A stretch of 64,000 bases of DNA from sequence record OP380604.1; one strand, 5' to 3'. The notes below the pieces were generated by a model, which saw only the letters and a list, made by a program, of their open reading frames with translations, was not told the DNA's origin and did not search any database. The position numbers and the translations under genes are program-made. Below, piece after piece: positions 5,319 to 64,000 of this stretch (the first letter of the stretch is position 1; each line of letters opens with the position of its first letter).

Positions 5319-5326
5319 TATTTAGT
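5319..5326 (-). promoter_or_regulatory. T4-type late promoter (ACTAAATA) for gp15
   Basis: TATAAATA-like octamer about 20 nt upstream of the gp15 start and AGGAGG SD. Confidence 0.6.
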
Positions 5327-5462
5327 CGCAGACTGCGGCGCAGCCGCTAAAAAGACAAAATAAAATCTCTTATATATCTTTAATGAGAATCTATTTTATC
5401 TTCTTCAATAAAATCAATAAGTTAGCTTCGCAGTCGCTGGCGCGACTTTCTGGAAGAGTATA
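5324..5462 (-). repeat. dispersed ~130-bp palindromic repeat, copy A (inverted relative to B, C, D)
   Basis: reverse complement matches the 34029-34105 core with 3 mismatches plus flanking GC hairpins; 5428-5448 is the exact reverse complement of 63980-64000. Confidence 0.93.
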
Positions 5463-5466
5463 GATT

Positions 5467-6072
5467 ATGAACAGAATCGGTATGAAAATTGCTCATTTCA
5501 CTATCACACGTATAATTTGTGTTGACAACGCTAGGAACAAAGTGTATGCTTGTGTTTGTGAAGAGTGCTCAAAGAAAACATGGCTAGGTAATCCTGTGTT
5601 CCCTGGTACTTTTCAACAGATTGAACGACTCATGTGTTGGTGCAATCGACGCTACCCGTTCAACGCTCAACAAAAAGAAACATTGGTGCGTCGCAACTTG
5701 TCAAGCACAAAGTTTAAACTTCATATGCCGCCTTCTCCAAAAGAAGAGTGGCACAGGGAAAGCCAAATTGCTTTGACTTGCGAGCACGGTCACACCTTCT
5801 ATGAGAAGGTAGGTAAGGTCATGTTCGACGCACCAATTTGCACTGTATGCGCTGGTATACAAAATAAAAAGCCAAAGCATCTTGCTGTTCAGATCACCAG
5901 TGAGTATGCAAAGAAACACGGCTACGCTATTCGTCAAGTCTCCGGTTGGGCCGGCAACAGCACACAATATCAGGTAACTTGCAAGCAACACGGTAGTTTT
6001 GATCTCTCGTTGCGTCGAATAAAATCCGACGCGATTTGCGAAATGTGTTCCACATACAAAAAGAGCCCATAA
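5467..6072 (+). CDS. zinc-ribbon repeat protein (homing-endonuclease-type DNA-binding modules, no evident nuclease)
   Basis: CEHGHTF..CTVC, CKQHGSF..CEMC, CEEC motifs; opposite strand to the flanking late genes. Confidence 0.65.
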   Translation: MNRIGMKIAHFTITRIICVDNARNKVYACVCEECSKKTWLGNPVFPGTFQQIERLMCWCNRRYPFNAQQKETLVRRNLSSTKFKLHMPPSPKEEWHRESQIALTCEHGHTFYEKVGKVMFDAPICTVCAGIQNKKPKHLAVQITSEYAKKHGYAIRQVSGWAGNSTQYQVTCKQHGSFDLSLRRIKSDAICEMCSTYKKSP

Positions 6073-6081
6073 CGGGCTCTT
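6061..6081. terminator. hairpin / convergent terminator
   Basis: AAGAGCCC-ATAAC-GGGCTCTT between convergent ORFs. Confidence 0.6.
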
Positions 6082-6083
6082 AC

Positions 6084-6872
6084 TTAAAACGATTCGAGAT
6101 CATCGAATGCACTAACAGGAACAGGCTTAGTAAGCTTGTGCTCTGCTATTGGCGCACCGTTTCCGATAATGTTGTCAAACTCAACAACAAAATCTTCCGC
6201 CTCTTCGTTGAATGCGTCATCTTCTGCAAACTCGTCCACTGAGATATCCGCGCGTCCGTCAAGTGCCTTGATCTGAGATAGCGGGTCATCGTCTCCGAGC
6301 ACATAGCGATTTGGATCAAACTCAGGCTTGATTTCCTCACCACTGTAAATGAATTTCTGTGCCGTTACTTTATATTTGGCAAGTTGTTCGCGTTTTATAA
6401 CAGGCGAACTGGGCTCTACCCAAGTAACTTCAAACAGGCTGTTATTCAGTGGGAAATAAATCAGATCTCCTTCCTTAACTCGCTGTCCGTCTGCTTGGAT
6501 CTCAAACAGCTTAGGACTAACAGACAATGTGATTTCGTCATTGACTTGCATACCGAATTTCGAAAAGAAATCCCTCTGTCCACTATATTCATCGAAACTC
6601 TCCAAATACATCGCGACTTTATATGCTTTCTTAAACTTAGATTGCATATCTTCGCCAAAGATTCGGTCAAAGTTCACGAACTCACGACGAATATAATACA
6701 TTTCAACACCAGTCATCTGAATAGATTCAGCAACAAGCATTTCATGCAATGAAAGAGTCGGCTCGTATTCGTGTTTATTCACATACGGATTTAATACTTC
6801 GTTTTGATAAGTCTTACTGTACCCAGCTCCCGTTTCGAGCTGGGCGAACATGCTTTGATTACGTGCAAACAT
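6084..6872 (-). CDS. gp14: neck protein
   Basis: NPYVNKH, LVAESIQMTGVEMYYIRRE, FFSKFGMQVNDE, EGDLIYFP. Confidence 0.95.
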   Translation of the reverse strand: MFARNQSMFAQLETGAGYSKTYQNEVLNPYVNKHEYEPTLSLHEMLVAESIQMTGVEMYYIRREFVNFDRIFGEDMQSKFKKAYKVAMYLESFDEYSGQRDFFSKFGMQVNDEITLSVSPKLFEIQADGQRVKEGDLIYFPLNNSLFEVTWVEPSSPVIKREQLAKYKVTAQKFIYSGEEIKPEFDPNRYVLGDDDPLSQIKALDGRADISVDEFAEDDAFNEEAEDFVVEFDNIIGNGAPIAEHKLTKPVPVSAFDDLESF

Positions 6873-6875
6873 CAG

Positions 6876-7796
6876 TTACCCCATAATAATGGGAAGCGGC
6901 TCCTCCAAAAGCATTAGCTCTTGGCGCAACACTTCTTTTTCTTGTCTGGCCTCTTCAATCAGTCTAGTGCCGTCAACTGTAACGCCACCAGGCAATGACA
7001 TACCTTGATGTTTCGCTAATATTTCACCCCAAATCTCTTTGGTGAGCGTTGTAGCGTAATCCTTGAGCCATCTATTGTTGAACACACCCTGATCCGGGAA
7101 TTCGCTCCTAGCTCGTCCAGCGACGTTTGCTGGCATTCTAGCGTATGGATTCATCCACTTATCTCTGTTATCAGCAGACGTTGGGCCACCCGCAACGATT
7201 CCAGCACCGGCGATACCACGAACAGATCTTTCAAGCTCGACAAAGTTCTGAATGTGAACTTCCATGATAATAATATCGTTCTCTCTAAAGTTTCCTGTTA
7301 GTTGAACAACACCGTTAACTGGGTCGAGCCAATAATCCGGAAGAGGATCAAGCTGATCCATCATCAAATTCTGATAGCTCTGGAATTGTGCAAAGAATCC
7401 AATATTACCAAGTGCTCCGAAAGGACCATGATAACTAATGCCCTGTGGACCGCCACCAAGCGTAGTCAAAAAGTCGGTGAAAAAGTTTAGCGTAGCTCCA
7501 CCGCCTAATCCGCCCCATAGAGTTGATTTGTGACGAATGATTTTTGTGATTGCAAAAATTGGATAAGCAGAAATGTCAATATAGCCGGTTGCTGCTTGTT
7601 CTTGATTCAGTTTAACACTCAGATAGGCTTTATTCAAGCCGTCGTGGTGATATTCTTTGTACAATTCAAGTGCGCGTCCAATACAATCATAGATATGATC
7701 CTCTGTTACTTCCACTTGAATTACGGGAGCGCCAAGACGTCTCAAAATAAGATCTTTAAGCTCTCTTGGGTTCCTAACAAAATTATTTGACATCAT
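6876..7796 (-). CDS. gp13: neck protein
   Basis: NPRELKDLILRRLGAPVIQVEVT, WLKDYATTLTK, LPGGVTVDG. Confidence 0.95.
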   Translation of the reverse strand: MMSNNFVRNPRELKDLILRRLGAPVIQVEVTEDHIYDCIGRALELYKEYHHDGLNKAYLSVKLNQEQAATGYIDISAYPIFAITKIIRHKSTLWGGLGGGATLNFFTDFLTTLGGGPQGISYHGPFGALGNIGFFAQFQSYQNLMMDQLDPLPDYWLDPVNGVVQLTGNFRENDIIIMEVHIQNFVELERSVRGIAGAGIVAGGPTSADNRDKWMNPYARMPANVAGRARSEFPDQGVFNNRWLKDYATTLTKEIWGEILAKHQGMSLPGGVTVDGTRLIEEARQEKEVLRQELMLLEEPLPIIMG

Positions 7797-7811
7797 CTCG
7801 GCTAATCTCCT

Positions 7812-8009
7812 TTATTCTTTTCCTGGGTGTGCAATTGGCGCGGCGAACGGATCTTTAGCAACTTCAACGCGCTTTTCAATTGCATCAACGTCTTCTGAGC
7901 CAAAGTTATTATCGATACGCTTTTCCAGAATCTTTACTAACTGCTTTAGCATCTGCAACAGCACTTCGGTGCCAACTCGCTTGAGCATAAACAAAATAAT
8001 TGCTTGCAT
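7812..8009 (-). CDS. hypothetical protein (65 aa)
   Basis: co-oriented ORF with AAGGA SD in the late operon. Confidence 0.65.
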   Translation of the reverse strand: MQAIILFMLKRVGTEVLLQMLKQLVKILEKRIDNNFGSEDVDAIEKRVEVAKDPFAAPIAHPGKE

Positions 8010-8018
8010 TTTTAATCC

Positions 8019-8183
8019 TTAGCCTTTCAGCTTTAAGTTTGTTGTTTGGCTGTTTACCGGTTGGTATTTGCCGTTTACTTTAATATAGGCAGTTCCCGTC
8101 TTGTATTGTCCGTTTATTTTGAGACGCACTTCACAAGGCGTATTTGTGTTATTTATCTTGATAAACAAAAATCTTCCCTCCAT
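8019..8183 (-). CDS. small putative fibre-cap protein (54 aa)
   Basis: read manually: MEGRFLFIKINNTNTPCEVRLKINGQYKTGTAYIKVNGKYQPVNSQTTNLKLKG; fills the gap in the operon. Confidence 0.6.
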   Translation of the reverse strand: MEGRFLFIKINNTNTPCEVRLKINGQYKTGTAYIKVNGKYQPVNSQTTNLKLKG

Positions 8184-8210
8184 ATAACGGCGAGTTTCCC
8201 CGCCGTTCGA

Positions 8211-8816
8211 TTAATATTTGATGTATAGGTGTCCGTCTGGATATCCGTCGTTGTCATTTGGATCAGCGGTACCATAGGTATACACTGAGTTCATGTGTAT
8301 GACGAAATAATCCTTAAACAATCCCGTGTCGATCAAACGATAATCCGACCAATCATTATTTCCCGGCAAACTTTCGCGTCTAACAGTTATTTCATGATTG
8401 GATCCCTGAATCAAAGTCAATGAGGATTTATCGTCTCCGATAGTTACCTTGTTGTCATTCCCGAGTTTAATAAGACTCTTTCTTTCGCCTTCTGTGCTAA
8501 GTGCATTATAGCCGATGTTGTTCGGAACGGTAATGTTTTTCACTACCATACCAGACACATCCGCTTCAATCACGGGCTTAACACTTTTTGGTCCAAGATA
8601 GAAAGATTTGCCGTCTTGCGTTAACTCTATGACGTTTTTTACTCCGTCATTTGTTTCTGCATGAACTGTAAATCCACTGGGAATAACAATTTTGTTGTTT
8701 GAGTCTGCAAACAATAGAACGGCTTTCTTATTGCTGCCGTTCTGGATTATTTGTCCGAACTCGTTTCCAACATATTCATCGACTTTGGGTAGGTCGGAAA
8801 TTTTAATTGTAGGCAT
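8211..8816 (-). CDS. putative whisker/collar accessory fibre protein (201 aa)
   Basis: MPTIKISDLP N-terminus and TADPNDNDGYPDGHLYIKY C-terminus, both common in phage fibre proteins. Confidence 0.6.
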   Translation of the reverse strand: MPTIKISDLPKVDEYVGNEFGQIIQNGSNKKAVLLFADSNNKIVIPSGFTVHAETNDGVKNVIELTQDGKSFYLGPKSVKPVIEADVSGMVVKNITVPNNIGYNALSTEGERKSLIKLGNDNKVTIGDDKSSLTLIQGSNHEITVRRESLPGNNDWSDYRLIDTGLFKDYFVIHMNSVYTYGTADPNDNDGYPDGHLYIKY

Positions 8817-8825
8817 ATAGCCTCC

Positions 8826-10430
8826 TTAGGGCTTTTGGGTTTCGATTAACTTATCGTCCTCAGTACCCAACTGATCTCCCTTTTCGTCCTGGATCAATCG
8901 TCTAGGAGTAGGGAACTCGGAGATTTTTGTTTTTATTGTACTCACACTTCCGAATCGATTCTTATAAACTGCTTGATAAACAAGACTATAATCATAAGTA
9001 TCAGAAACAATAACACTTAGATTATTCGAGTTCGAATTCTCGATTGCTCCGTATTGAGTTCTCCATTCTATTGTGTCGTAATTGCTTCCGGATGATTTAA
9101 GCTCTACCGTCATACCAGATGTTCCGATATATTCAGAATCAGGTTGAACTGTAATCTTAGGCAGCAATGCGCCGAGCCACTCGTATTTCGTATCGTCTGA
9201 CCCAAAATCAACAGTCAACATATCAGGACTAGGAGTTTCACTCGAAATATTTCCCGTTCCTTCTTCGATGTTGAAAATATGGTTTCTTCCGTTTACGAAC
9301 ATACCGAATTGCTCAACTATGACTCCTTTAATAGGATACTGCTTACTACCGAACACAAAATTAGTAGCAGCAACAACCGAAGTTGTGTCTGGAATTCTAG
9401 CTATTAAATCTCCGTTTGCGTGTAATCTAATATTTCTAATGTATCCACCAGAAACATCATACCAGATTCCTGCACCAAATACCTGATTCTTCGGAATAGG
9501 AGTTATAATAGGTACTTCATGTGTAATAACGTTTTCTGCCATAACAAACAGCGTATTTTTAACGATATCAACTCCGATTCCGGAGGTCGAAATATCGTTA
9601 TTATATCCAATGATCATTATGCGATCCGATACATCATCAAGCAACTGAACACTAGACTCCAAATGATTTGTTCCTGCGATTGGAGGAAGCGTTTTATTCA
9701 GCTTCATGTATGTGTCTTTCATGATAATCGCATTGTAGTTGGCATCAACTGGAGTAGGCTGGTAAGCAAGCATAACACTCGACTTAGTTACCATGGGCTG
9801 ACTAACTTGGATTTCTCCACTGTCGTTGTAATCAACTCCAACACCGATATTAAACTGCACCAAACAATCTTTTAATGCTTTGAAAGTTGATTGCACTCTC
9901 ATACCTGCTTTCAATTCAGGAACAGTAGGAAACTGTGTAATGAACTGAATATATTCTTTCTGTTTATCAGATGAAACTCCGTCAACGTAGATATCAAATG
10001 ACTTTCTTCCTACTTGAAGATTAATAGAATGAACAAAAGCACTTGCGTTATACGTTTCACCAGCTTTAAGATAAATTCTAGTTCTAAAGAACATTCGACT
10101 TGTTGCCGCTTTGAATGTATACGCTCGGCTATATTCGTCCTCGCGATTCGAATAGAACGCATACGCATTTCCACCAACTTGAGGAGCATTAGAAAATGCG
10201 CTCCAGCCCGGTGGTGTAAATCCGATTACTCTTCCGTCCGCATACGTGAAATAATCTGTTCCGTTCAATAAACGGCTATTGATTAGCAAGTTTTCATCTT
10301 TTGGATCATAAGTTCTACGCCATGCTCCACCAGAATAAACCCAAGCAACGGCATTTCTCCAATATCCGTTATAAATTTTGGGGGCTGCATTATGCAGCAC
10401 CCCATTTTGATCAGCAATTCTAATTGGCAT
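8826..10430 (-). CDS. putative whisker-associated structural protein (beta-rich, Ig-like C-terminal region)
   Basis: 534 aa directly after wac; N-terminal AWVYSGGAWRR motif, C-terminal LIQDEKGDQLGTEDDKLIET motif. Confidence 0.6.
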   Translation of the reverse strand: MPIRIADQNGVLHNAAPKIYNGYWRNAVAWVYSGGAWRRTYDPKDENLLINSRLLNGTDYFTYADGRVIGFTPPGWSAFSNAPQVGGNAYAFYSNREDEYSRAYTFKAATSRMFFRTRIYLKAGETYNASAFVHSINLQVGRKSFDIYVDGVSSDKQKEYIQFITQFPTVPELKAGMRVQSTFKALKDCLVQFNIGVGVDYNDSGEIQVSQPMVTKSSVMLAYQPTPVDANYNAIIMKDTYMKLNKTLPPIAGTNHLESSVQLLDDVSDRIMIIGYNNDISTSGIGVDIVKNTLFVMAENVITHEVPIITPIPKNQVFGAGIWYDVSGGYIRNIRLHANGDLIARIPDTTSVVAATNFVFGSKQYPIKGVIVEQFGMFVNGRNHIFNIEEGTGNISSETPSPDMLTVDFGSDDTKYEWLGALLPKITVQPDSEYIGTSGMTVELKSSGSNYDTIEWRTQYGAIENSNSNNLSVIVSDTYDYSLVYQAVYKNRFGSVSTIKTKISEFPTPRRLIQDEKGDQLGTEDDKLIETQKP

Positions 10431-10440
10431 CTTTAGTTCC

Positions 10441-18992: not shown

Positions 18993-19004
18993 AAAATCAC
19001 CAAT

Positions 19005-19027
19005 AAAAAAGCCACCCGAAGGTGGCT
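19005..19027 (-). terminator. intrinsic terminator after gp8
   Basis: AGCCACC-TTCG-GGTGGCT followed by a T-run on the minus strand. Confidence 0.85.
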
Positions 19028-19031
19028 CTCA

Positions 19032-33969: not shown

Positions 33970-34027
33970 TCATTATATGATTGCAATACTATCCAGTAAA
34001 CATTGATCGTCAGATTGCGAGCGTAGC

Positions 34028-34143
34028 GAGCTAACTTATTGATTTCATTGAAGAAGACAAAATAGATTCTCATTAAAGATCTATAAGAGATTTTATTTTG
34101 TCTTTGATCAAATAGCGAGCGGCTACGCCGCAGTCTATCGACT
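34028..34143 (+). repeat. dispersed palindromic repeat, copy B
   Basis: 78-bp core identical to 34208-34285; followed by AGCGGCTACGCCGCAGTCTATCGACT. Confidence 0.95.
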
Positions 34144-34163: not shown

Positions 34164-34334
34164 TATACTCTTCCAGAAATCGATGATCGCAAGATCGCGA
34201 ACGTAGTGAGCTAACTTATTGATTTCATTGAAGAAGACAAAATAGATTCTCATTAAAGATCTATAAGAGATTTTATTTTGTCTTTTTATAACGAGGTAGT
34301 AACAATCTAGCGGCTACGCCGCAGTCTATCGACT
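34164..34334 (+). repeat. dispersed palindromic repeat, copy C (tandem with B, 180-bp period)
   Basis: TATACTCTTCCAGAAA lead shared with copy A, identical core, same GC hairpin tail. Confidence 0.95.
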
Positions 34335-34458: not shown

Positions 34459-34466
34459 TATAAATA
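34459..34466 (+). promoter_or_regulatory. late promoter TATAAATA for gp26
   Basis: exact T4 late consensus 23 nt upstream of ATG. Confidence 0.85.
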
Positions 34467-34488: not shown

Positions 34489-35265
34489 ATGGCAAAGTTT
34501 ACAAGGGACATGCTTCTTGAAGCTGTTCAACAATCGAGCGTCAAGCTGTCTAGTGGAAAGAAAGTTCGAGTTCGTGCTTTCTTGGTGAAAGAATATAAAA
34601 TTTTGATGTTGGCTCATGAAAGTGGCTCTCCTATGGAAGACGCTATGATCCAAATTCTGAAAAACTGCGTGATTGATACGTCTGGAATCGATTTGGAGAC
34701 GCTTCCGATCTTTGACATAGAGACTATCTATCTAGCAGTGTGGAAGCTCTCCAAGGGTACGTCAGTCGTTCCTGTGTCGTTTATTTGTCAGAATATGATC
34801 GACGCTTTGGACGAAGAGGGTAATCCCGTAATGATTGGCGATGAACCGGCTAAACGTCAGTGCTCAACTCAGATCAAGGTAAATGCGGATCTGCGTCGTG
34901 CGAAGTTGTCAAGAGTCCCGGAAAGTATGATTAAGATCAACGATAAGCTTTCTATCAAGATGCGTTATCCGACTGTATATGAATCTGAATTCTTTGACGT
35001 AGAAAAAGAATCCGATTTGTTTGATATCACTATGCGTTGTGTTCAGGAAGTTCATCTTAACGGCGATGTTATGAAAGTCGGAGAAGATATTCAACATGAA
35101 GAGTTGATCGAACTATTGGATTATTTGGACAAAGACGGCTATGAGAAAATGGCTAAGTTTGTTAATGATATTCCACAAACGACTCTTGACTTGGCAGTAA
35201 AATGTCCTCATTGCGGACATGCTGAACCTGTTACGCTGAGAGGGCTCTCCGATTTTTTCGACTAA
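34489..35265 (+). CDS. gp26: baseplate hub assembly protein (gp26/gp51-N family)
   Basis: KVRVRAFLVKEYKILMLA, LPIFDIETIYL, IKMRYP, CPHCG, ends LRGLSDFFD. Confidence 0.85.
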   Translation: MAKFTRDMLLEAVQQSSVKLSSGKKVRVRAFLVKEYKILMLAHESGSPMEDAMIQILKNCVIDTSGIDLETLPIFDIETIYLAVWKLSKGTSVVPVSFICQNMIDALDEEGNPVMIGDEPAKRQCSTQIKVNADLRRAKLSRVPESMIKINDKLSIKMRYPTVYESEFFDVEKESDLFDITMRCVQEVHLNGDVMKVGEDIQHEELIELLDYLDKDGYEKMAKFVNDIPQTTLDLAVKCPHCGHAEPVTLRGLSDFFD

Positions 35266-47025: not shown

Positions 47026-47101
47026 AGGGGATTCGCCTAGTTGGCCCAAGGCACCGGGTTTGATCCCGGTATCACAAGTTCGAATCTTGTATCCCCCGCC
47101 A
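47026..47101 (+). tRNA. tRNA-Gln(TTG)-like with a 6-nt anticodon loop
   Basis: CCGGG-TTTGAT-CCCGG; G73, CCA. Confidence 0.75.
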
Positions 47102-48631: not shown

Positions 48632-48640
48632 TAAATAAAA

Positions 48641-48662
48641 GGGAGCTTCGGCTCCCTTTTTC
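48641..48662 (+). terminator. intrinsic terminator
   Basis: GGGAGC-TTCG-GCTCCC plus T-run. Confidence 0.88.
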
Positions 48663-50293: not shown

Positions 50294-50671
50294 ATGTCAA
50301 GAACGTTTAGAGTTAAGAACAAAGATGAAGTTAAGTACCTGATCGGTCACGACTTCTGGAAAGAGAACTGCAATGCATACCACCGCATAGGTAAGTACGA
50401 TTTCTGGCGCTATCATATTCAGCAGGAGCGTATCAATATGGACGTTTATGAGGAATATGAGCGTGAGAAAAACCAGATCATCCGTGGTTATGACTGTGAA
50501 GTGAGCAAAACTGGTAACTACTCCAACAAGAGTTGTCGAGAGTATGCCAATCTGGGTCGCGCCAAAGTTCGCGATCAACTGAAAAAGATCTCACTGGACA
50601 ACCAAGATGTTGAGATCATCGACCGTAGAAAGTACGATGCTTGCGCTTTTCGCTGGTTCATTCAATGGTAA
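50294..50671 (+). CDS. hypothetical basic protein
   Basis: GGAG SD, terminator after. Confidence 0.75.
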   Translation: MSRTFRVKNKDEVKYLIGHDFWKENCNAYHRIGKYDFWRYHIQQERINMDVYEEYEREKNQIIRGYDCEVSKTGNYSNKSCREYANLGRAKVRDQLKKISLDNQDVEIIDRRKYDACAFRWFIQW

Positions 50672-50674
50672 ACA

Positions 50675-50741
50675 AAATCCCGCTTCGGCGGGATTTTTTA
50701 TTTCCAAAAAGTGTTGACACTCTTTTGTGACCTGATATGAT
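50675..50741 (+). promoter_or_regulatory. terminator followed by early promoter
   Basis: AAATCCCGC-TTCG-GCGGGATTTT then TTGACA-16-TATGAT. Confidence 0.75.
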
Positions 50742-52745: not shown

Positions 52746-53345
52746 ATGGCGAAACTTTTTTTCACGCATAGTGCGATGAACGTGGGCAAGAGCACTCAAT
52801 TACTGCAAGTGGCTTTCAACTACAACGAGAGAAATCAAAACGTTCTGCTGTACAAACCTGCGTTTGACACTAGAACAGAAGGTACGATTGGATCACGTAT
52901 CGGTATCCAGCGTGAGTGTCGCTGTGTGCATGTTGACGAAAACATGTTTACAATGATCGAAAAAGAGAGTAAACTGTCCGATATCGCCTGTGTTCTTGTT
53001 GATGAAGCACAGTTCCTGACTGAAAAACAAGTGTGGGAACTGTCCGACGTTGTTGACAAGCTGGATATCCCTGTTATGTGCTACGGACTGCGTACCGATT
53101 TTCTCGGTAACTTGTTCCCTGGCTCTAGGGCATTACTTTCGATTTCAGATGAAATTAGACAACTGTCTGGTATCTGTGATTGTGGTAGAAAATCCTGTAT
53201 GGTAGCTCGCGTTGATGATAACGGCAATGTTATCCGTCGAGGTGAACAAATTTGCATTGGGGCTGAACAACGTTACATTTCGTTCTGCCGCAAGTGCTGG
53301 AAAAACAAACTGTCCTATGATTGGGACAAATTCAAACAAACCTGA
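52746..53345 (+). CDS. tk: thymidine kinase
   Basis: HSAMNVGKST, VLVDEAQF, CYGLRTDF, CDCG, YISFCRKC. Confidence 0.97.
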   Translation: MAKLFFTHSAMNVGKSTQLLQVAFNYNERNQNVLLYKPAFDTRTEGTIGSRIGIQRECRCVHVDENMFTMIEKESKLSDIACVLVDEAQFLTEKQVWELSDVVDKLDIPVMCYGLRTDFLGNLFPGSRALLSISDEIRQLSGICDCGRKSCMVARVDDNGNVIRRGEQICIGAEQRYISFCRKCWKNKLSYDWDKFKQT

Positions 53346-53358
53346 AAGAGGTAATTCT

Positions 53359-54795
53359 GTGTCTAATTTTATGAATGCAATGGTACAAGCTCAAGCCCGC
53401 ACTGCTAACGGTGCTGTCACTAACTACACCACTGGCGACAAGTGTCTGAATCTGTTTTCTCAGATTGGTTCCTCTCGCGGGAAAGATCTGACCCAGATGT
53501 TTGTTGATGCTTATACCGAGTCTCCTGACTGGGCTGTTCGCATTCTGCAATGGGCTCGCGATATTCGCGGTGGTGCCGGTGAACGTGAACAATTCATCCG
53601 CCTGCTGAAAGTCCTTGCGCATCGTCACCCTGTTGACGCCACCGTAGTTCTGATGAACACTCCTGAAATCGGTCGCTTCAAAGACGTGGTAGCAATGTTC
53701 AATTCTCCGATTCAGGACGCTGCTGTGGCTATCATGGTTGATGCAATCATGACCAAGCAAAACGGTCTTGCTGCAAAGTGGGCACCTCGGAAGGGCAAAG
53801 AAGCCGGTATTCTGGCCAAAGCTATGCGAATGACTGCTAAAGAATATCGTCACACTATCGTCCGTATGTCGAACACCGTTGAACAAAAGATGTGTGCTCG
53901 TCAGTGGGACGGTATTGAGTTCGGTAAACTGCCGTCTGTTGCATCTGCTCGATATCAGAAAGCATTCCTGAAAAACGCGAACGAGCGTTATGTTGCTTAT
54001 CTTGAGTCTCTGAAAAAGGGTGAGGCTAAGATCAACGCTGCTGCGGTTTATCCGTATGACATGATCAAATCCCTGCGTACCGGTTCTTCTGTTGCTGCTG
54101 ATGCACAATGGAAAGCACAACGCGACTGGATGGCTGGCTCCACTGAAAACGTAATCGCGATGGTTGACGTTTCTGGCTCTATGGGCACTCCGACCGCTGT
54201 TGCTGGCTTGTCTGCTATGGACATCGCGATTTCTCTGGGTCTGTACATCGGCGAACGCTCGCGCGGTGTGTTCAAGAACGAAGTGATTACCTTCGATGAT
54301 AATCCTGAGTTCTACAACATCAAAGCGAAAGGCGACGATCTGCAAAGCATGGTGAATCATCTGGGACGCGCTCCGTGGGGTGGCTCTACCAACTTTGCTG
54401 GTGCATTCAAGATCATTCTTGATCGCGCTGTACGCAATCGAGTTCCGCAAGAAGATATGCCGACTATGATGGTTGTCTTGTCTGACATGGAATTCAACGT
54501 TGCTGATGGTGGCTATAGTGGTTACTATCGTATGCGTGACCGTGAGCCTACCAACTTTGAGGTGATTCGTCAGACTTACCGCGACGCTGGTTACGAAATG
54601 CCGAAACTGGTGTTCTGGAATCTTTGCCCGCGTCCGACTAACAATCCGGTGACCAAAGATGATCAAGGCACTGCTCTTGTTTCTGGTTTTAGTCCCGCAA
54701 TCATGGAGACAATCCTGAGTGCGAAAGAGTTTAACCCGATGCAAATCATGCTCGACAAGATCATGAGCGACCGTTACGTCGGTATCGACTTCTAA
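53359..54795 (+). CDS. DUF2828-type helical plus vWA protein (Ro60/TROVE-like architecture)
   Basis: GTG start after GAGGT; RDIRGGAGERE, AAKWAPR, EQKMCARQW, VDVSGSM MIDAS, TFDDNP, WGGSTNF, SDMEF, LVFWNL. Confidence 0.85.
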   Translation: MSNFMNAMVQAQARTANGAVTNYTTGDKCLNLFSQIGSSRGKDLTQMFVDAYTESPDWAVRILQWARDIRGGAGEREQFIRLLKVLAHRHPVDATVVLMNTPEIGRFKDVVAMFNSPIQDAAVAIMVDAIMTKQNGLAAKWAPRKGKEAGILAKAMRMTAKEYRHTIVRMSNTVEQKMCARQWDGIEFGKLPSVASARYQKAFLKNANERYVAYLESLKKGEAKINAAAVYPYDMIKSLRTGSSVAADAQWKAQRDWMAGSTENVIAMVDVSGSMGTPTAVAGLSAMDIAISLGLYIGERSRGVFKNEVITFDDNPEFYNIKAKGDDLQSMVNHLGRAPWGGSTNFAGAFKIILDRAVRNRVPQEDMPTMMVVLSDMEFNVADGGYSGYYRMRDREPTNFEVIRQTYRDAGYEMPKLVFWNLCPRPTNNPVTKDDQGTALVSGFSPAIMETILSAKEFNPMQIMLDKIMSDRYVGIDF

Positions 54796-54800
54796 AAAAA

Positions 54801-54851
54801 GCCACCTTCGGGTGGCTTTTTTATTGACAACTGATTTGGATATGAGATAAT
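54801..54851 (+). promoter_or_regulatory. terminator followed by early promoter
   Basis: GCCACC-TTCG-GGTGGC-TTTTTT then TTGACA..GATAAT. Confidence 0.75.
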
Positions 54852-54874
54852 ACGAATCCAACTAGGAGAATGAT

Positions 54875-57606: not shown

Positions 57607-57622
57607 TCAGTTAAGATAAATT

Positions 57623-57684
57623 AAGGCACCTTCGGGTGCCTTTTTCGTTTTGGTGCTTGACATGCCAATCTAACCTGCTATTAT
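57623..57684 (+). promoter_or_regulatory. terminator followed by early promoter
   Basis: AAGGCACC-TTCG-GGTGCCTTTTT then TTGACA-16-TATTAT. Confidence 0.75.
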
Positions 57685-57967: not shown

Positions 57968-57968
57968 C

Positions 57969-59322: not shown

Positions 59323-59332
59323 GGAAATAAAA

Positions 59333-59590: not shown

Positions 59591-59606
59591 TTCCCCGATT
59601 TTTATA

Positions 59607-59879: not shown

Positions 59880-60504
59880 AGCAAGTGCCGGTGCAGGCAA
59901 GACTAGCAAAGCTATTGAACTTGCGGTAGAAGAAGCGAAGAAAGGCAAGTATGTCGTCTTTTTGAACAACGAAGAAACCCAAGAAAGTATCATTGGTAAA
60001 ATCTCAGATATCGATACCGAATTTGGCGACGGTGAAATCGCTGTTGGTGAAGTTGACGGCGTAACTATGAGTGCCCTACAGGACGCGGTTCATAACGCTG
60101 TGGTAGAGCTTGGCAGAGAGCGTAAAATCGATGTTATAGTTCTGGACTTCTCCGGTTATGCAGATTTCAACGGCTCTGCAAATCGACTGCTGAAATTTAT
60201 GTCTTACATCAAGAGGATTGAAGTAGTTCATGAAATCGATGTTATTTTCACTATACAAGTGATTAACAAGACCAAACGTGTAACTCGTCCGAAAGTTACC
60301 GAGATCTGGCAAGATCGTGAAGTCAAGTCGAAAGACGGTAAAACTCCGCCATGTTTCGATAACATCGATATGGTTTCAATCGACGTAACTAAGGCGAGTC
60401 CTATGCTGCCAAATCGCGATTCTCAGATTGTGATTTATCAGGATATGGAAGGTATCTACGTCGGTAAGTTTGTTGATTCCAAATATTACGGATGTAAAGC
60501 GTGA
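59863..60504 (+). CDS. P-loop NTPase-like protein
   Basis: N-terminal ASAGAGKTS Walker A-like motif, VIVLD Walker B-like motif. Confidence 0.6.
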   Translation: MIKVIKASAGAGKTSKAIELAVEEAKKGKYVVFLNNEETQESIIGKISDIDTEFGDGEIAVGEVDGVTMSALQDAVHNAVVELGRERKIDVIVLDFSGYADFNGSANRLLKFMSYIKRIEVVHEIDVIFTIQVINKTKRVTRPKVTEIWQDREVKSKDGKTPPCFDNIDMVSIDVTKASPMLPNRDSQIVIYQDMEGIYVGKFVDSKYYGCKA

Positions 60505-60866
60505 TTCATAAGTGCCTTGACGATCCAAAAATGAATCTCATTAACTATATGTCGAGTGGAATAACAGGCTATACGTTTTTGGGATTCATAGAAATACAGA
60601 AAGATGATTATTGGGGCATCAAAGTTGGCGAACGGACGTTCGCCGCTTGTCATTTGCTCAACGAACGTTCAACATGGCCTGTTTCCGAAGAAGAAGGAAA
60701 AGAGCAAAAATTCATTGACAGCGGACACAATACCGTTCTATATTTCAAGGGAACCGATAACACAAGTTATCTAAAACGGTTTAAATCTAAAGATAGTGCA
60801 ATCAAATGGTTTTATAAAACGAAAGTTTTTATTACCGATAACTCCTCTTGCTGGGTGAATAGCTAA
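60501..60866 (+). CDS. hypothetical protein
   Basis: coupled ORF. Confidence 0.7.
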   Translation: MIHKCLDDPKMNLINYMSSGITGYTFLGFIEIQKDDYWGIKVGERTFAACHLLNERSTWPVSEEEGKEQKFIDSGHNTVLYFKGTDNTSYLKRFKSKDSAIKWFYKTKVFITDNSSCWVNS

Positions 60867-61252
60867 TGAGAATAGAACGAATTCGAGACCACGACGAATA
60901 TTGCGACGTCGGAGAAGTAACTCATGATTATGTGGAAGTAAGCAAAGAAGAATTTGACAAGCTGCGAGATCTAGCGGAAGATCGCGATGTAACTGGGTTA
61001 TGTTCGCCTCCGATTGAATTTCTTTACTCAAAGCGGCTTCATTCTGACGGATGCGAAATTCTTGGCAAAGCGTTTCTGTATGAGTCTGAGAAACGTCCAG
61101 GGGCGCCACGCGAAACAAATCAATATTTGAAGTTGACAGAAATGCCGAAACCTTATAAGCTGGTAACACTGATGAAAGACGATTTGACTTTGGAGCAACG
61201 TCGAGCGTATCGCGAAAGAGTTAAATCCGGTTATTACAAATCAAAAGGGTAA
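60866..61252 (+). CDS. hypothetical protein
   Basis: coupled ORF. Confidence 0.72.
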   Translation: MRIERIRDHDEYCDVGEVTHDYVEVSKEEFDKLRDLAEDRDVTGLCSPPIEFLYSKRLHSDGCEILGKAFLYESEKRPGAPRETNQYLKLTEMPKPYKLVTLMKDDLTLEQRRAYRERVKSGYYKSKG

Positions 61253-61255
61253 AAT

Positions 61256-61804
61256 ATGTTTTATCATAAGAGCAATATCAAAGACGTTCCTGTGGAGCTT
61301 GTGGAAATTCACCTCGCCGGTAAGCCGTTCGTTGATGAAGCGAATAACGTCAAGTTCAAAAATTTTGTTCGATACGGAGTGAGCAATGGTTCCGGAGTAT
61401 ATTCTCCGTTCTATCGTGCTGAATCCGAAGACGGTAAAACCGAGCTTACTTTCCGTCTGTTCGGTGCGTATGAAGTCGAGATTACTCGGGTATATAAGGA
61501 TTCCAAAACTTATAGCGTAACTCGTCAACAAATGAAGCCTCTCGGTATTGTTCGCAAAGCAAGCTCCAACGGCTTGTTTGTTGAAAAAGCAGCATATCGG
61601 ATCGGTGTCGGTGCTCCACTTGATATCGCCGATGAAGTTGAAAGTCGGAACGGGAAATGCAAAGTTCTGTTGATTACTTCCGATGCCGTTGTTCTGAGTG
61701 ATGCTAAAGGTAAGACTATTCTTATCCGTAAGAACGACGAAGGCGCTATGGATGCACATGGAATCGGCTTTGTTGAGCTATGTGAGTCGGATAACGAATT
61801 TTGA
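61256..61804 (+). CDS. hypothetical protein
   Basis: AAGGG SD; hairpin terminator at 61808-61826. Confidence 0.75.
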   Translation: MFYHKSNIKDVPVELVEIHLAGKPFVDEANNVKFKNFVRYGVSNGSGVYSPFYRAESEDGKTELTFRLFGAYEVEITRVYKDSKTYSVTRQQMKPLGIVRKASSNGLFVEKAAYRIGVGAPLDIADEVESRNGKCKVLLITSDAVVLSDAKGKTILIRKNDEGAMDAHGIGFVELCESDNEF

Positions 61805-61836
61805 TCGAGGGCCTTCGGGCCCTTTTGGAGCATAAA

Positions 61837-62118
61837 ATGCATTACGAAACAAAACATTATCTAACGCATCCGGTATTGATAAATCGATTCGCCTACATTC
61901 TGCGAGTTCTGAATGACTTCTATGGCAAAACTAAGTCACAGAAGATCAGAGATACCGAGAGTTTCAAACAGTACAAACGCGACACCTATTGGCTGTTCAC
62001 TAAGCTGTGTCCTGAGATCACACAAGATCCAAAGTCCGGTATGGTCGAAGAGTTCTGTTATGAAGGCGGCATGATCTCAATGAAAATTTTTGTGAGAATA
62101 GTTCCGAAAAAAGATTGA
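61837..62118 (+). CDS. hypothetical protein
   Basis: MHYETK start after GGAG. Confidence 0.68.
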   Translation: MHYETKHYLTHPVLINRFAYILRVLNDFYGKTKSQKIRDTESFKQYKRDTYWLFTKLCPEITQDPKSGMVEEFCYEGGMISMKIFVRIVPKKD

Positions 62119-62172
62119 CACGAAATCCATAGCTGTTAATATAGCTACATCAAACGAACTGAGGAATAAATC

Positions 62173-62370
62173 ATGATGACTACTGCTGAACTGAAAGCAA
62201 AACGCGCCAAACGTGGATTCGGTATTGAGAAAGAAGTTTTGATCGAATCTCATGCATTCGCACAACGCGCACTGTCACAAGCTGTTATCATGGAACACAA
62301 AGAAAATATGGATTTGTTCCGCAGTCATATCAAAGCATACGAAACTCGTATTAACGAAATCACACACTAA
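62173..62370 (+). CDS. hypothetical protein (early promoter TTGACA..TAATAT at 62115-62142)
   Basis: GAGG SD. Confidence 0.75.
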   Translation: MMTTAELKAKRAKRGFGIEKEVLIESHAFAQRALSQAVIMEHKENMDLFRSHIKAYETRINEITH

Positions 62371-62379
62371 GGAAATATC

Positions 62380-62997
62380 ATGGCTTATTATCTGAAACAT
62401 CAAGTAGCTCTCCCGAAAGTAGAATACAACTATATCCGACTGATTGACATGAAACCAGGAGAATCGATTTCAATCAAAGATCGTTCTTATGTTCTTCTGA
62501 ATATCGAACGAACTGGTACCAACGTTGAGCCAGTCTACAACCTAGAAGCGAGCGATGAACGTGTTTCTATGCGTATTGTCAACGGCAACGCTCTGATCAC
62601 TCGGGTCAACAAAGTTAACTTTGGTATCACCAACGAAAGTATCGAAGTCGGCACAATGGGCTGGGTTAAGCGTGGCGGTTTCTACGCTCACAAAGTACGG
62701 AAAGTGATGAATCCTGGTCTGATTACAGGTCGTGCTATCGTCGAAGGTGACATGATCGAACTGTACCGGAATAGCGGTACTCGGATCGAAGTTCTGAAAA
62801 TGGGCGGTGAGCCTATGATCGACCCGATGACACAAGAATACATCCTGCTGAAAATTATCAGCAAAGACAACAGCAAAGATCAAGTTGTGTTCCACTCTGT
62901 CAAATCCGAAATGGATGATTGCAACCTGCAACGTGTTGCTGGTGATGTTGTCTATGTCAACAACTACATGGAATCAATTATTCCACATCGTCGTTGA
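62380..62997 (+). CDS. hypothetical protein
   Basis: AAGGA SD. Confidence 0.78.
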   Translation: MAYYLKHQVALPKVEYNYIRLIDMKPGESISIKDRSYVLLNIERTGTNVEPVYNLEASDERVSMRIVNGNALITRVNKVNFGITNESIEVGTMGWVKRGGFYAHKVRKVMNPGLITGRAIVEGDMIELYRNSGTRIEVLKMGGEPMIDPMTQEYILLKIISKDNSKDQVVFHSVKSEMDDCNLQRVAGDVVYVNNYMESIIPHRR

Positions 62998-63065
62998 TTT
63001 ACATAGAAAGTTGAAGTACAATCTGGGCCTATCGAGTAAGGCCCTTTTTCATTTATGAGGATATC

Positions 63066-63968
63066 ATGATCAACATTATCAAAAACACCACACAAGCTGC
63101 AATCATTGGCGATTGCGTAGGCGCATTCAACGAATTCAATTTCGGCACTAAAGGAAAGAAAAGACTGCGTAACGTAGATCTCGAACTCCTGAAAACAAAA
63201 CGCGATGTTTTTAACAATCAATACGGTAACTTCACAGACGATACCACTTGTGCGCTGATCACCATGCGCAACTTCAAATATGGTGAGTTTGATGTTCCAG
63301 CTATTAAGCGCGATATGAAGCGTTGGATCGAGCGTGGTGCGTTTTCTTCCACTGGCGAGTGCTTTGATGTTGGTACAGGTACTGCCTATGCCATACTCAA
63401 GGACCAACCGGTAACAGACCCATCTAAAGGTGCCGGTAACGGCGCGCTCATGCGTATGTATCCAGTCGCGATTGCAACTTACGGTAGAAGTCCAGAAGAT
63501 ATCGAGCGAATCGTTAAATACATGACGGAGTTTACCCATCCGGTTCCGTTGTGTCTGCATTACTCTATGCTATATGTTCGTATCATGCATCGGATATTCG
63601 ACGGAGTAAACAAAAGGACGCTATCCAAAGAGTTTGGAGCGTATTTCGATGAAGACTCATGCTTGCCTACTGGCTACGTTAAGGACTCGCTCACAATCGC
63701 TTGGAGAGTGTTCCTAGAGTTCGAACACAAAGAGTATGGGATTTTTCTCATAGCAAACATGGGATTAGATAGCGACACAATCGCAAGTATCTATGGATCA
63801 ATGATTGGCGCATATACAACTGTCCAGAACAAAAGTCAAGAGTTTACTCCTTGGCTAGTAGAGAATATCAAACGACAAGATCTAGTTGATAGTATTGTTA
63901 AAGAGTTCACTCACCGAGTTGTTTGTACAATGATTGATCATTTACCAAGTTATTTGCACAAAAGTTAA
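63066..63968 (+). CDS. ADP-ribosylglycohydrolase (DraG/ARH family)
   Basis: GDCVG, FTDDT, CFDVGTGT, GAGNGALMR, FTHP, DSDTIASIYG. Confidence 0.9.
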   Translation: MINIIKNTTQAAIIGDCVGAFNEFNFGTKGKKRLRNVDLELLKTKRDVFNNQYGNFTDDTTCALITMRNFKYGEFDVPAIKRDMKRWIERGAFSSTGECFDVGTGTAYAILKDQPVTDPSKGAGNGALMRMYPVAIATYGRSPEDIERIVKYMTEFTHPVPLCLHYSMLYVRIMHRIFDGVNKRTLSKEFGAYFDEDSCLPTGYVKDSLTIAWRVFLEFEHKEYGIFLIANMGLDSDTIASIYGSMIGAYTTVQNKSQEFTPWLVENIKRQDLVDSIVKEFTHRVVCTMIDHLPSYLHKS

Positions 63969-63979
63969 TCAGTTGTAGG

Positions 63980-64000
63980 AAGTCGCGCCAGCGACTGCGA
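63980..64000 (+). repeat. start of dispersed repeat copy D (truncated by the window edge)
   Basis: AAGTCGCGCCAGCGACTGCGA is identical to the reverse complement of 5428-5448. Confidence 0.8.

Follow-up and report, generated by a model that had tools for sequence, protein, structure and literature searches.

A conserved palindromic element at seven intergenic sites of the T4-like Aeromonas phage avDM12-TAAL

The 64-kb window analysed here corresponds to positions 124001-188000 of record OP380604.1, from the 231-kb genome of the T4-like Aeromonas phage avDM12-TAAL. It holds four copies of a dispersed element, designated copy A (inverted), the tandem pair B/C and copy D, which is truncated by the window end (Table 1). 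An earlier note on this DNA had listed at least four copies at these positions. Four is correct for the window, and the avDM12 genome contains exactly eight, at seven intergenic sites, with no extra or degenerate copies found in it. All copies are intergenic according to the deposited annotation, as the note had also stated. The neighbouring genes, among them gp47, an ndd-like gene, gp15, a baseplate gene and an Alt-like gene, mix early and late functions and share no theme; copies A and B/C lie within the conserved virion module. In the GenBank record the full copy D ends about 127 nt past the window (approximately window-equivalent 64127), where it is followed by a CTAAATA late-type motif. 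Copy A is always adjoined by ORF170, a clade-specific gene whose product is a treble-clef zinc-finger array (DUF723/CapR/DUF4379) without a recognisable nuclease domain. ORF170 is derived from the DNA-binding part of homing endonucleases.

Table 1. Positions of the element copies and adjoining features in the window.
Feature	Position	Strand	Basis or remark
Late-promoter-like ACTAAATA	5319..5326	-	Abuts copy A right end, upstream of gp15
Copy A, whole element	5324..5462	-	Repeat search
Copy A, right hairpins	Hairpin 2 5324-5334; hairpin 1 5335-5347		Window + coordinates
Copy A, core	3' arm 5352-5369; centre 5370-5384; 5' arm 5385-5402		Window + coordinates
Copy A, GCTAAC-N3-TTGA box	5414-5426		Window + coordinates
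Copy A, left side	GC hairpin 5433-5446; extension 5447-5462 (similarity reaches ~5472)		Window + coordinates
ORF170, 201 aa	5467..6072	+	Divergent from gp15; start overlaps copy A left extension
Copy B, first of tandem pair	~33989..34143	+	
Copy B, left parts	Degenerate left extension 33989-34000; left module 34012-34031; box 34030-34042		
Copy B, core	5' arm 34054-34071; centre 34072-34086; 3' arm 34087-34104		
Copy B, right hairpins	34119-34131 and 34132-34143		
Copy C, second of tandem pair (180-nt period)	34164..34334	+	
Copy C, left parts	Left extension 34164-34179; left module 34185-34211; box 34210-34222		
Copy C, core	5' arm 34234-34251; centre 34252-34266; 3' arm 34267-34284		
Copy C, right hairpins	34310-34322 and 34323-34334		
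T4-type canonical late promoter motif TATAAATA	34459..34466	+	~125 nt after copy C, upstream of baseplate gene at 34489
Copy D, cut by window end	63971..64000 (start ~63971-63982)	+	Left GC hairpin 63982-63995

Repeat searches of the window identified inverted arms at 5348-5427 and 34209-34288, which are 80 nt long and 96% complementary with three mismatches. Copies B and C form a 114-nt direct repeat and their cores are identical over approximately 77 nt; the core of the inverted copy A differs at three positions, as described before. Chance repeats in the same window reach just 25-40 nt at about 70% identity; thus, the repeats of the element extend far beyond chance. The 18-bp inverted repeat, its 15-nt centre and both GC hairpins of the earlier description are present, but the unit is larger than the ~130 bp given there. 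The whole element is a large imperfect palindrome of approximately 150-190 bp, including a conserved left extension of about 25 nt and a second small hairpin on the right. Its terminal GC-hairpin modules are inverted copies of each other, and its stem-loop module comprises a 66-bp AT-rich near-palindrome and two to three GC hairpins. The core has a GC content of 21.6%, compared with 42.2% for the genome, and seven of the eight copies rank within the 29 most AT-rich 78-nt loci (the three lowest included).

The folding potential of the element and the compensatory changes in its stems are established. Folding of the forward strand gives three hairpins (z = -5.5 for RNA and -3.5 for DNA). Within the core helix, pairing reaches 90.9% of cells, whereas sliding the partners gives no more than 66.5%, with RNAalifold and a separate pair count in agreement; four pairs are altered on both sides, and a single T.T mismatch is kept in 31 of 32 distinct copies. 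Among the small GC hairpins, those on the left show four or more alternative stems and those on the right three or more, with free loops. Pairing is strand-biased, with G.T-type pairs in 10 columns versus A.C-type pairs in four. The forward RNA hairpin is the more stable strand in 33 of 34 copies, and a U run lies 3' of the long hairpin in most forward copies. The centre is conserved more strongly than the arms, and the invariant unpaired motifs are a GCTAAC-N3-TTG box and the loop centre. At the invariant box, the IHF consensus WATCAANNNNTTR is matched in 27 of 34 copies, but in just two of the six aligned PX29 copies; there are 11 occurrences of the consensus in the window, where 5.4 are expected.

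Several known classes of signal were considered and rejected. Comparison with Rfam 15 gave only chance-level hits (E ≥ 0.6), far below gathering scores, which excludes a known Rfam RNA. The element is also not a canonical intrinsic terminator, as it does not combine a GC-rich stem, a short loop and a direct T run. Its long stem is AU-rich with a 15-nt centre, its GC hairpins are without T runs, and a consensus scan called no intrinsic terminator within it. The canonical terminators of avDM12 (family D5, and upstream of site c2) look unlike the element. A near-consensus sigma-70 promoter was likewise rejected: the best site inside the repeat, TTGATT-N18-TAGATT, matches 8 of 12 positions, is not called by a promoter scan and is poorly kept in PX29, where its -10 T is lost in six of seven copies. 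Of the 48 early promoters that Nolan predicted in Aeh1, none falls within the element at A, B/C, c2 or c3.

It is also very improbable that the copies are small RNA genes, each specifying a structured RNA of about 100-150 nt that would be transcribed from a weak promoter within the copy and would stop at the long hairpin and U tract. Such genes would agree with the forward-strand pairing bias and with the three-hairpin fold and its U tract, and a self-contained gene is compatible with orientation independence. A TTGAYT-N17-AGAAAT arrangement can also be recognised by eye in the left extension of several copies. However, the promoter candidates are poor and, in PX29 as well as at c2 and D, are not kept; a transcript from the internal -10-like site would begin within the hairpin; and Rfam offers no match.

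Ah1, Aeh1 and PX29 have the same seven sites filled, and phiAS5 has at least six of them filled, so that three genera are represented; none of the sites examined in any relative was empty. The flanks of these shared sites are only 68-85% identical among the three genera. Element copies are 93-97% identical within one genome and about 80% identical between PX29 and avDM12, whether or not they are orthologous, and within a genome all copies change together. In PX29, the symmetric arms have changed in parallel. Orientation is flipped between genomes at two sites, c1 and c3. The element at c1 was itself replaced as well as flipped, and c1 and c2 adjoin segments that differ between relatives. The identity profile of Ah1 and avDM12 has no special step at the elements. 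The element is present in 13 phage records; an exact search with its strict centre pattern found nothing in 185,579 bacterial and archaeal genomes or in the JGI metagenomes.

The near-identity of the copies had been taken to imply either selection or recent spread. Recent spread and assembly artefact are both excluded because the same seven sites are common to three genera. Copies that the earlier note allowed might be artefacts, or absent from all relatives, are present in at least five independently sequenced genomes and in environmental contigs. Selection stands, and the comparisons support the view that near-identity reflects selection together with concerted evolution. On this comparative evidence the element is judged to be an old, selected and hitherto undescribed non-coding signal of this Aeromonas phage clade, and not a jumping one. 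Its existence, anatomy, fixed orthologous sites, concerted evolution and inter-operon position are established.

A recent spread through the genome by a non-autonomous mobile element, whether MITE-like or travelling with a homing endonuclease gene, is accordingly largely refuted, and is hardly probable. The mutually inverted terminal modules, the homing-endonuclease origin of ORF170 beside copy A and the single tandem duplication, B/C, which arose in the Aeh1/Ah1/avDM12 lineage, would fit such an element. The occupied orthologous sites and the lack of additional or decayed copies argue against it, as do the strict centre pattern, for which bacterial genomes and metagenomes gave no exact match, and ORF170, for which no paralogue or relic was found elsewhere in the avDM12 genome. 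No target-site duplications were seen by eye in the flank alignments, and no candidate transposase was noticed among the annotated genes or scanned proteins. A recombination switch, in which the inverted copies A and B/C would invert the 28-kb gp14-gp54 neck/baseplate block, had also been suggested and is extremely improbable. The 80-nt inverted repeats are similar and long enough for T4-type recombination, and the element itself has flipped in place at c1 and c3. Nevertheless, five genomes are collinear across A and B/C, gp15 and gp14 are adjacent as in T4, and metagenome contigs give only the known flanks, with no new junction.

Each avDM12 copy is bounded by the stop codon of an upstream gene and by a promoter-like motif directed away from the element. 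Four of these motifs are sigma-70-like (10-12 of 12 matches) and three are late-type; they adjoin either end of the element at a distance of 0 to 125 nt. The position in Aeh1 orthologous to the motif beside copy A is a predicted late promoter, Pl:148910 (Nolan et al., 2006). In Ah1, no promoter-like motif was seen by eye between c1 and the next gene. Site c2 is preceded by one canonical terminator, or two in PX29. At c3 and c4, the orientation of the element opposes local transcription and no U run follows the hairpin on that side. The element occupies just seven junctions, compared with 124 sigma-70-like sites in avDM12 and 68 terminators predicted in Aeh1.

With a promoter-like motif beside every avDM12 copy, the palindrome could serve as a shared operator or enhancer, bound by a phage factor that co-regulates the adjacent promoters. 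Candidate factors would be ORF170 or a partner of AsiA that replaces MotA. The clade encodes AsiA, with asiA annotated in avDM12, but neither MotA nor a middle-promoter consensus was found for Aeh1 (PMC1524935). The parallel changes in the symmetric arms of PX29 are in keeping with an operator, and ORF170 occurs in exactly the 13 element-holding phage records, plus one distant hit (24.5% identical) in the element-free PhAER-4. However, the adjacent genes have no common theme, the motif may lie at either end and at varying distance, and conservation of the centre above the arms is the reverse of that in a typical dimer operator. The divergence of ORF170 (60% identity in phiAS5 and 68% in PX29) also does not follow that of the element (90% and 81%, respectively), and an operator is considered quite improbable.

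Promoter-early stem-loops (PeSLs) are known from the T4-type phages RB49/phi1, PST/T4 and nt-1/KVP40 (Arbiol 2010, PMC2839356; Comeau 2014, PMC4122927). PeSL stem-loops terminate transcription in reporter assays (PMC2839356), and unspecified 'PeSL-like sequences' near g43 in Aeh1 have been mentioned by the same authors (PMC2839356; PMC4122927). Like PeSLs, the Aeromonas element has a stable stem-loop just 5' of a promoter-like motif, in a gap beginning at the upstream stop codon, about 100 bp of it are conserved, and some copies abut segments that vary between close relatives. A promoter-like motif abuts each avDM12 copy; thus, the cassette of element and motif resembles a PeSL, while the repeat alone does not. 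A PeSL carries its own strong and active early promoter of sigma-70 type, with near-consensus -35 and -10 boxes about 17 nt apart, and recombination between PeSL copies forms mini-circles. The Aeromonas repeat itself lacks a near-consensus promoter, the motif being outside it and late-type at three sites. There are eight Aeromonas copies rather than dozens, evenly spread and found also in conserved virion-gene blocks, whereas PeSLs cluster in hyperplastic regions, and association with indels is limited to c1 and c2. In addition, the Aeromonas stem-loop module is far larger, its sites are fixed across genera and both orientations occur.

REP/BIME sequences are bacterial chromosomal repeats with tens to hundreds of copies and a cognate RAYT transposase, for which mRNA 3'-end protection and nucleoid-protein binding have been proposed. 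Those of E. coli reportedly include an IHF-binding class, RIB/RIP, said to have been described in 1993 by Boccard and Prentki and by Oppenheim. The phage element resembles this class in being extragenic, at the ends of transcription units and in either orientation, in its inverted GC-rich hairpin units around an AT-rich centre, which in most copies, though in few from PX29, carries a putative IHF site, and in its species-specific sequence and concerted evolution. It differs in residing in a lytic phage genome with eight copies instead of on a bacterial chromosome with hundreds, and it shows no sequence homology in the exact centre-pattern search. Its hairpins are also much shorter (5-bp stems), it has a long central palindrome, and no RAYT-type transposase was noticed in the annotation or the scanned proteins. 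At the RNase III sites of T7, the upstream message retains a 3' hairpin that stabilises it; these sites are all co-oriented with transcription and have no flanking GC hairpins. The Aeromonas copies, for which such cleavage is hypothetical, likewise form a family of long hairpins that resemble each other, keep an internal mismatch and sit at orthologous message boundaries. In contrast to the T7 sites, the Aeromonas element occurs in both orientations and with flanking GC hairpins.

By analogy with PeSLs and REP/BIME, the element is tentatively regarded, at somewhat less than even confidence, as a structured boundary module that ends, processes or caps transcripts. It would be a clade-specific structured spacer between transcription units, equivalent to a greatly enlarged and conserved stem-loop half of a PeSL-type terminator/promoter cassette, and akin in build to REP/BIME (RIB) palindromes and T7 inter-mRNA RNase III hairpins. 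When the upstream unit is transcribed, the RNA of the element would fold in three parts: a small GC hairpin, an AU-rich hairpin of about 20-25 bp with one conserved internal mismatch and, in the forward orientation, a U tract after it, and one or two further GC hairpins. This stack may attenuate read-through, or be cut by a double-strand-specific RNase, and would cap the 3' end of the upstream message, after which the abutting promoter would fire the next unit unoccluded. The GCTAAC-N3-TTG box and loop centre are probably read by a protein, and gene conversion in a highly recombinogenic phage could keep the copies alike. All functional steps of this scheme are inferred, from termination or processing and the stabilisation of messages to binding by a protein and gene conversion.

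The three-hairpin fold, covariation, forward-strand bias, U runs and position between stop codon and promoter-like motif favour such a boundary module. The location of c1 and c2 beside variable segments and the replacement and flipping of c1 are also behaviour described for PeSLs. On the other hand, an AU-rich long stem is unusual for a terminator or stabiliser, no terminator was called, and the canonical terminators preceding c2 would make a terminator role there redundant. The opposed orientation at c3 and c4, the flips at c1 and c3, the small number of junctions, the featureless Ah1/avDM12 identity profile and the missing motif at c1 in Ah1 also count against it. Moreover, an RNA role does not explain the even spacing of the sites, the invariant unpaired motifs or the extreme AT content.

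A close rival to the boundary module, possible though somewhat unlikely, is a DNA-level landmark: sites recognised on duplex or transiently unwound DNA by a host or phage protein and serving as replication origins. Their AT-rich unwinding core would lie between GC clamps; hotspots of recombination-dependent replication or topological-domain anchors are related forms. A protein-binding or origin role is a serious candidate. Spacing of the seven sites around the 230.7-kb circle is even, the gaps measuring 23-44 kb (P ~7e-4 for the minimum gap and ~7e-4 for the CV, in a post hoc test). The sites are few, fixed across three genera and orientation-independent, their cores are extremely AT-rich, and joint change of the copies in each genome is expected if they co-evolve with one binding factor. 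The IHF match at the invariant box and the constant presence of a zinc-finger gene next to copy A also agree with a landmark. T4 has at least five origins, each of about 100 bp with a promoter and an AT-rich unwinding element (PMC3016281). Like T4 oriF/oriG, the element acts in cis if at all, spans about 100 bp between genes or in a promoter region and has an easily unwound AT-rich core, and there are several per genome, some in late-gene regions.

T4 origins share no motif, however, and at oriF/oriG a MotA-dependent promoter fires into the unwinding element (PMC3016281). The Aeromonas sites all share one motif, their strong promoter-like motifs fire away from the AT-rich core, and the clade is without MotA. 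The internal promoter-like site is poor and decayed in PX29, and the IHF match has gone from most PX29 copies. Covariation in the small hairpins and the G.T bias favour single-strand folding over plain duplex recognition. It is unlikely that these palindromes are the replication-initiation or chromosome-organising sites of the clade, with one shared motif in place of the MotA-dependent origins of T4, which are heterogeneous. A dedicated factor would then recognise the shared motif in the form of an extruded hairpin or a bent duplex. In such a scheme one candidate factor would be ORF170, as a zinc-finger protein domesticated from a homing endonuclease, and IHF may assist. ORF170 is a candidate trans-acting partner of the element by association only.

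Phage replication and gene control have T4-like phages as their reference system, and the Aeh1/PX29 group encodes AsiA but not MotA. Among the conserved non-coding signals of these 220-233-kb genomes, the element stands out most. Should it prove to be a boundary or processing hairpin, it would show that RNA punctuation of the REP/BIME or T7 type is used by large lytic phages, and the PeSL idea would come to include late genes and core modules. As an origin or organising site, it would provide a directly testable map of the initiation sites of the clade, together with a candidate recognition protein. Either way, repeats of 80-150 bp break short-read assemblies of such phages, metagenome contigs end at the repeat, and the copies are natural homology arms for recombination and engineering.

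The element, a palindromic intergenic spacer, is present in exactly eight distinct copies at seven sites in Aeromonas phage avDM12-TAAL. Genome-wide BLAST and profile HMM searches of avDM12 gave this count and found no degenerate extra copies. The earlier note had proposed at least four copies from the window; those four (A, B, C and D) were all found where it had placed them, and all eight are intergenic in the deposited annotation. The note's description of an 18-bp inverted repeat with a 15-nt centre and of two small GC hairpins was confirmed as well. The cores of B and C are identical, and over 80 nt the core of A is 96% complementary to that of C. The length of the unit, originally put at about 130 bp, is ~150–190 bp in the alignment of copies. 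Background repeats in the window are merely 25–40 nt at ~70% identity.

Positions of the element copies and of the other features discussed (L-numbers label sequence segments from avDM12 or its relatives)
Feature	Window position	Record or segment position	Strand	Remark
c1		0.2 kb; L002 120-275	+	intergenic
c2		23.3 kb	+	intergenic
c3		48.0 kb	-	intergenic
c4		92.1 kb	-	intergenic
A	5324-5462	129.4 kb	-	intergenic
B	~33989-34143	158.1 kb (with C)	+	tandem with C, 180-nt period
C	34164-34334	158.1 kb (with B)	+	tandem with B
D	from ~63971-63982, cut by window end	188.0 kb	+	intergenic
ORF170	5467-6072		+	201 aa
ADP-ribosylglycohydrolase gene	63066-63968		+	before D
1212-aa protein gene		L005 14154-17792	+	after D
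Canonical terminators	19003-19031, 48633-48661, 50670-50698, 54793-54821, 57617-57645
tRNA-like gene	47026-47101		+
VWA-type gene (DUF2828/DUF7788)	53317-54795		+	492 aa
Antisense open frame	53332-54861		-	509 aa
gp55-to-c2 region		L002 16227-23243		~7 kb
Homing endonuclease gene of PX29		L099 371-1054
End repeat of record		230717-231190		compare 1-474

The window is identical to positions 124001–188000 of OP380604.1, the 231,190-bp record of avDM12-TAAL, a T4-like phage of the Aeh1 group recorded as Straboviridae, Chrysonvirus. Its minus strand carries the tail sheath gene and then terminase, neck and baseplate genes; beyond these virion genes, the plus strand carries a 23-tRNA cluster and small early ORFs. 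The final 474 bases of the record largely duplicate the first 474, with an exact match over the first 400, which leaves a unique circle of 230,716 bp. This end repeat looks like an untrimmed overlap from circular assembly, and it makes copy c1 count twice in simple repeat tallies. Between tRNA-Pro and tRNA-Ser, ARAGORN reported a tRNA-like gene with an abnormal anticodon loop and a two-base 'anticodon'; it is absent from the GenBank annotation and could be a decayed or unusual tRNA. A 509-aa open frame of striking length runs antisense to nearly the entire VWA-type gene. It gave no match in a Pfam scan and is probably a shadow ORF.

Alignment of the copies resolved seven successive parts. From the left, these are a conserved extension of ~25 nt with CCAGAAA at its end, either a small GC hairpin or a module that lacks a hairpin, an invariant GCTAAC-N3-TTG box, ~13 free positions, a long AT-rich palindrome whose pairing nearly reaches the conserved centre, a spacer of 0–40 nt, and a TAGC box with one or two further small GC hairpins. 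Because the right end repeats the left end in inverted and diverged form, the entire unit is one large imperfect palindrome. The core is only 21.6% GC against 42.2% for the genome, and seven of the eight copies fall within the 29 most AT-rich 78-nt loci of the genome, including the three lowest.

In a DNA search, the element was confined to 13 Aeromonas phage records, which include avDM12, Ah1, Aeh1, phiAS5, phiWae14, PX29, AsFcp_1, 2 and 4. Copies from the relatives were taken from IMG/VR and GenBank and their flanks mapped onto avDM12; within IMG/VR, only Ah1, Aeh1, phiAS5 and PX29 gave true matches, the other loci being rejected as chance AT-rich matches. Ah1 and Aeh1 carry all eight copies at the same sites as avDM12, and PX29, which belongs to another genus, has all seven sites filled. 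In phiAS5 at least six sites are filled (A, B/C, c3, c4 and D, with the c2 intergenic region also matched). At B/C, phiAS5 and PX29 each have only one copy, which indicates that the tandem duplication is younger. Since orthologous sites are shared across three genera, as assigned by the records of these phages, with flanking DNA only 68–85% identical in these comparisons, ordinary transposition and the recent spread suggested by the earlier note are ruled out, as is an assembly artefact. That the element is mobile is accorded a very small probability. Searched as a strict pattern, the centre was matched exactly by none of 185,579 bacterial and archaeal genomes and nowhere in the JGI metagenomes. 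Wastewater and abattoir metagenomes contain related phages, whose contigs end at the repeat and then run into known flanks of other copies; they revealed no new joints and so are uninformative on inversion. A search of sequencing runs turned up these metagenomic DNA contigs alone, with no RNA among them.

The inverted A and B/C copies had also been thought capable of inverting the gp14-gp54 block. Such inversion is not evident, all genomes being collinear across A and B/C with gp15 and gp14 adjacent as in T4, and an inversion switch is given almost no credence. Single copies do differ in orientation relative to their flanks: c1 of avDM12 is opposite to that of Ah1, Aeh1 and PX29, and c3 in avDM12, Ah1 and Aeh1 is opposite to that in phiAS5 and PX29. 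Copy c1 of avDM12 resembles the phiAS5-type copies, and looks like the product of a local replacement or flip at the element. Beside c1, ~1 kb is non-homologous between genomes (L002 versus L009, L017 and L102). Comparison of Ah1 with avDM12 in 300-nt windows gave patchy identity throughout, with no special step at the elements that would mark recombination breakpoints. The ~7 kb of large ORFs from gp55 to c2 in avDM12 is missing in PX29 (L109) and partly missing in Ah1 (L014), and homology of avDM12 with PX29 and phiAS5 restarts exactly at the c2 element.

Scored over 63 core columns, copies inside one genome are 93–97% identical (91% in phiAS5). Between PX29 and avDM12, orthologous copies are 80.7% identical and non-orthologous copies 80.0%, and this near-equality indicates that the copies change together at fixed sites. 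In the PX29 palindrome, complementary changes in both arms occur at four pairs, with the centre unchanged; all of these double changes stem from one lineage and count as four events. The 21-pair helix has 90.9% of its cells paired, as against at most 66.5% when the partners are slid, and RNAalifold independently predicts the same helix. Some changes in phiAS5 are uncompensated. Of 32 distinct copies, 31 retain one T.T mismatch within the stem. Among the small hairpins, no fewer than four alternative stems occur on the left side and three on the right side, and the loops are free. In 33 of 34 copies the hairpin of the forward RNA is more stable than its reverse counterpart, and G.T-type pairs occur in 10 columns, against 4 for A.C-type pairs; this strand bias gives a modest hint that one strand folds single-stranded. 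Small RNA genes, as a reading of the copies, are considered very unlikely; an Rfam scan at a permissive threshold returned chance matches only.

Each copy in avDM12 starts a few to ~80 nt from the upstream stop codon. At four sites, no more than ~10 nt separate the element end from a promoter-like motif, which is directed away from the element along local transcription. Sigma-70-like motifs with 10–12 of 12 matches are found at c1 to c4, and late-type motifs overlap the element end at A and D and lie ~125 nt beyond C. For Aeh1, Nolan et al. placed a predicted late promoter at the position that corresponds to the flank of copy A. The plus strand of avDM12 holds 124 comparable sigma-70-like sites and the genome is dense, so this adjacency is only mildly informative. 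No promoter-like motif was seen by eye before the next gene at the flipped c1 of Ah1.

The element itself was rejected as a good promoter: its best internal site scores 8/12 with an 18-nt spacer, a consensus scan calls nothing inside it, and the T of the -10 motif is lost in six of seven PX29 copies. None of the 48 published early-promoter predictions for Aeh1 falls inside it at the four sites that could be placed. A canonical terminator was likewise rejected, as a consensus terminator scan calls none inside the element. The ordinary terminators of avDM12 form a distinct intrinsic family with an A run, a GC stem, a TTCG-type loop and a T run, and two of them make a 40-nt inverted pair 35.7 kb apart.

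Tentatively, the element may be a boundary module acting via the transcript, a reading that ranks first with a DNA landmark close behind. Transcripts reading through would be stopped or processed there, the message upstream would be capped, and the promoter that follows would stay unobstructed. Such a role would account for the covariation of the hairpin and its conserved internal mismatch, as well as for the strand bias and the position between stop codon and promoter, and T4-type phages provide experimental precedent (PMC2839356). The element would then be a much enlarged version of the promoter-early stem-loop (PeSL) of T4-type phages; its build resembles that of REP/BIME elements, and its logic that of the inter-message RNase III hairpins of T7. 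The boundary role leaves unexplained why only seven junctions carry the element and why these are evenly spaced. Nor does it account for the invariance of the unpaired motifs, the extreme AT content of the core, the two sites with reversed orientation or the redundancy at c2, which is preceded by separate textbook terminators.

All of these features favour the second-ranked possibility, that the element is a putative protein-bound DNA landmark, for which a replication origin is the obvious candidate. T4 has five or more origins of ~100 bp, and an AT-rich unwinding element is part of each (PMC3016281). The arcs between the seven sites are 23.1, 24.7, 44.1, 37.3, 28.8, 29.9 and 42.9 kb. Among random placements, ~7 in 10,000 have a minimum gap at least as large or a spread at least as even; the test was chosen post hoc, and the relatives are not independent. 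A two-arc orientation pattern was dropped, having a chance of ~20–34% by our own count and not being conserved in PX29. The invariant box matches the IHF consensus in 27 of 34 copies, although the match is weak in PX29. A further reading, in which the copies would serve as a shared operator, is improbable.

ORF170, a zinc-finger gene on the strand opposite to gp15 and gp14, sits between these two genes and diverges from gp15, with a start that overlaps copy A in its left extension. The protein is a stand-alone treble-clef zinc-finger array (DUF723, CapR and DUF4379) without a nuclease part. In homing endonucleases, these modules are usually the DNA-binding part fused to GIY-YIG, HNH or restriction-like nucleases, and from its domain content ORF170 appears to derive from such a part. 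Its AlphaFold model (mean pLDDT 52) was too poor for a fold search. ORF170 occurs in exactly the 13 element-bearing records among 50,697 phage records, plus one distant match, and adjoins copy A in every record checked; only three 90% clusters were found among 5.8 billion proteins. The distant homologue is a 348-aa ORF in PhAER-4, a phage without the element, and no comparable palindrome lies alongside it. Divergence of ORF170 does not follow that of the element, and what ties them is co-occurrence within a single clade, which does not prove a link. The left flank was rejected as a homing-spread relic of the 5' end of ORF170, because most sites in every genome retain the left extension and neither a paralogue nor a relic of ORF170 exists. 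PX29 has a homing endonuclease gene of the Seg-like GIY-YIG type next to this locus, between gp13 and gp14, and the neck genes appear to form a hotspot where endonucleases insert.

Copy D separates the ADP-ribosylglycohydrolase gene from that of the 1212-aa protein, which has a weak match to the PARP catalytic domain, below the Pfam cut-off. Judged by these domain matches, the pair could be an Alt-like writer and eraser of ADP-ribosylation.

Neither the Aeh1 genome paper with its supplements nor the 2010 review of T4 relatives, in which the word 'repeat' is absent, describes the element, and the two PeSL papers do not either. The nearest mention is a remark in the PeSL literature on unspecified 'PeSL-like sequences' in the Aeh1 g43 region. 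The element belongs among the dispersed structured intergenic palindromes; what is unusual in it is the conservation of its sites across genera, its concerted evolution with compensation, its even spacing and its tolerance of flipping.
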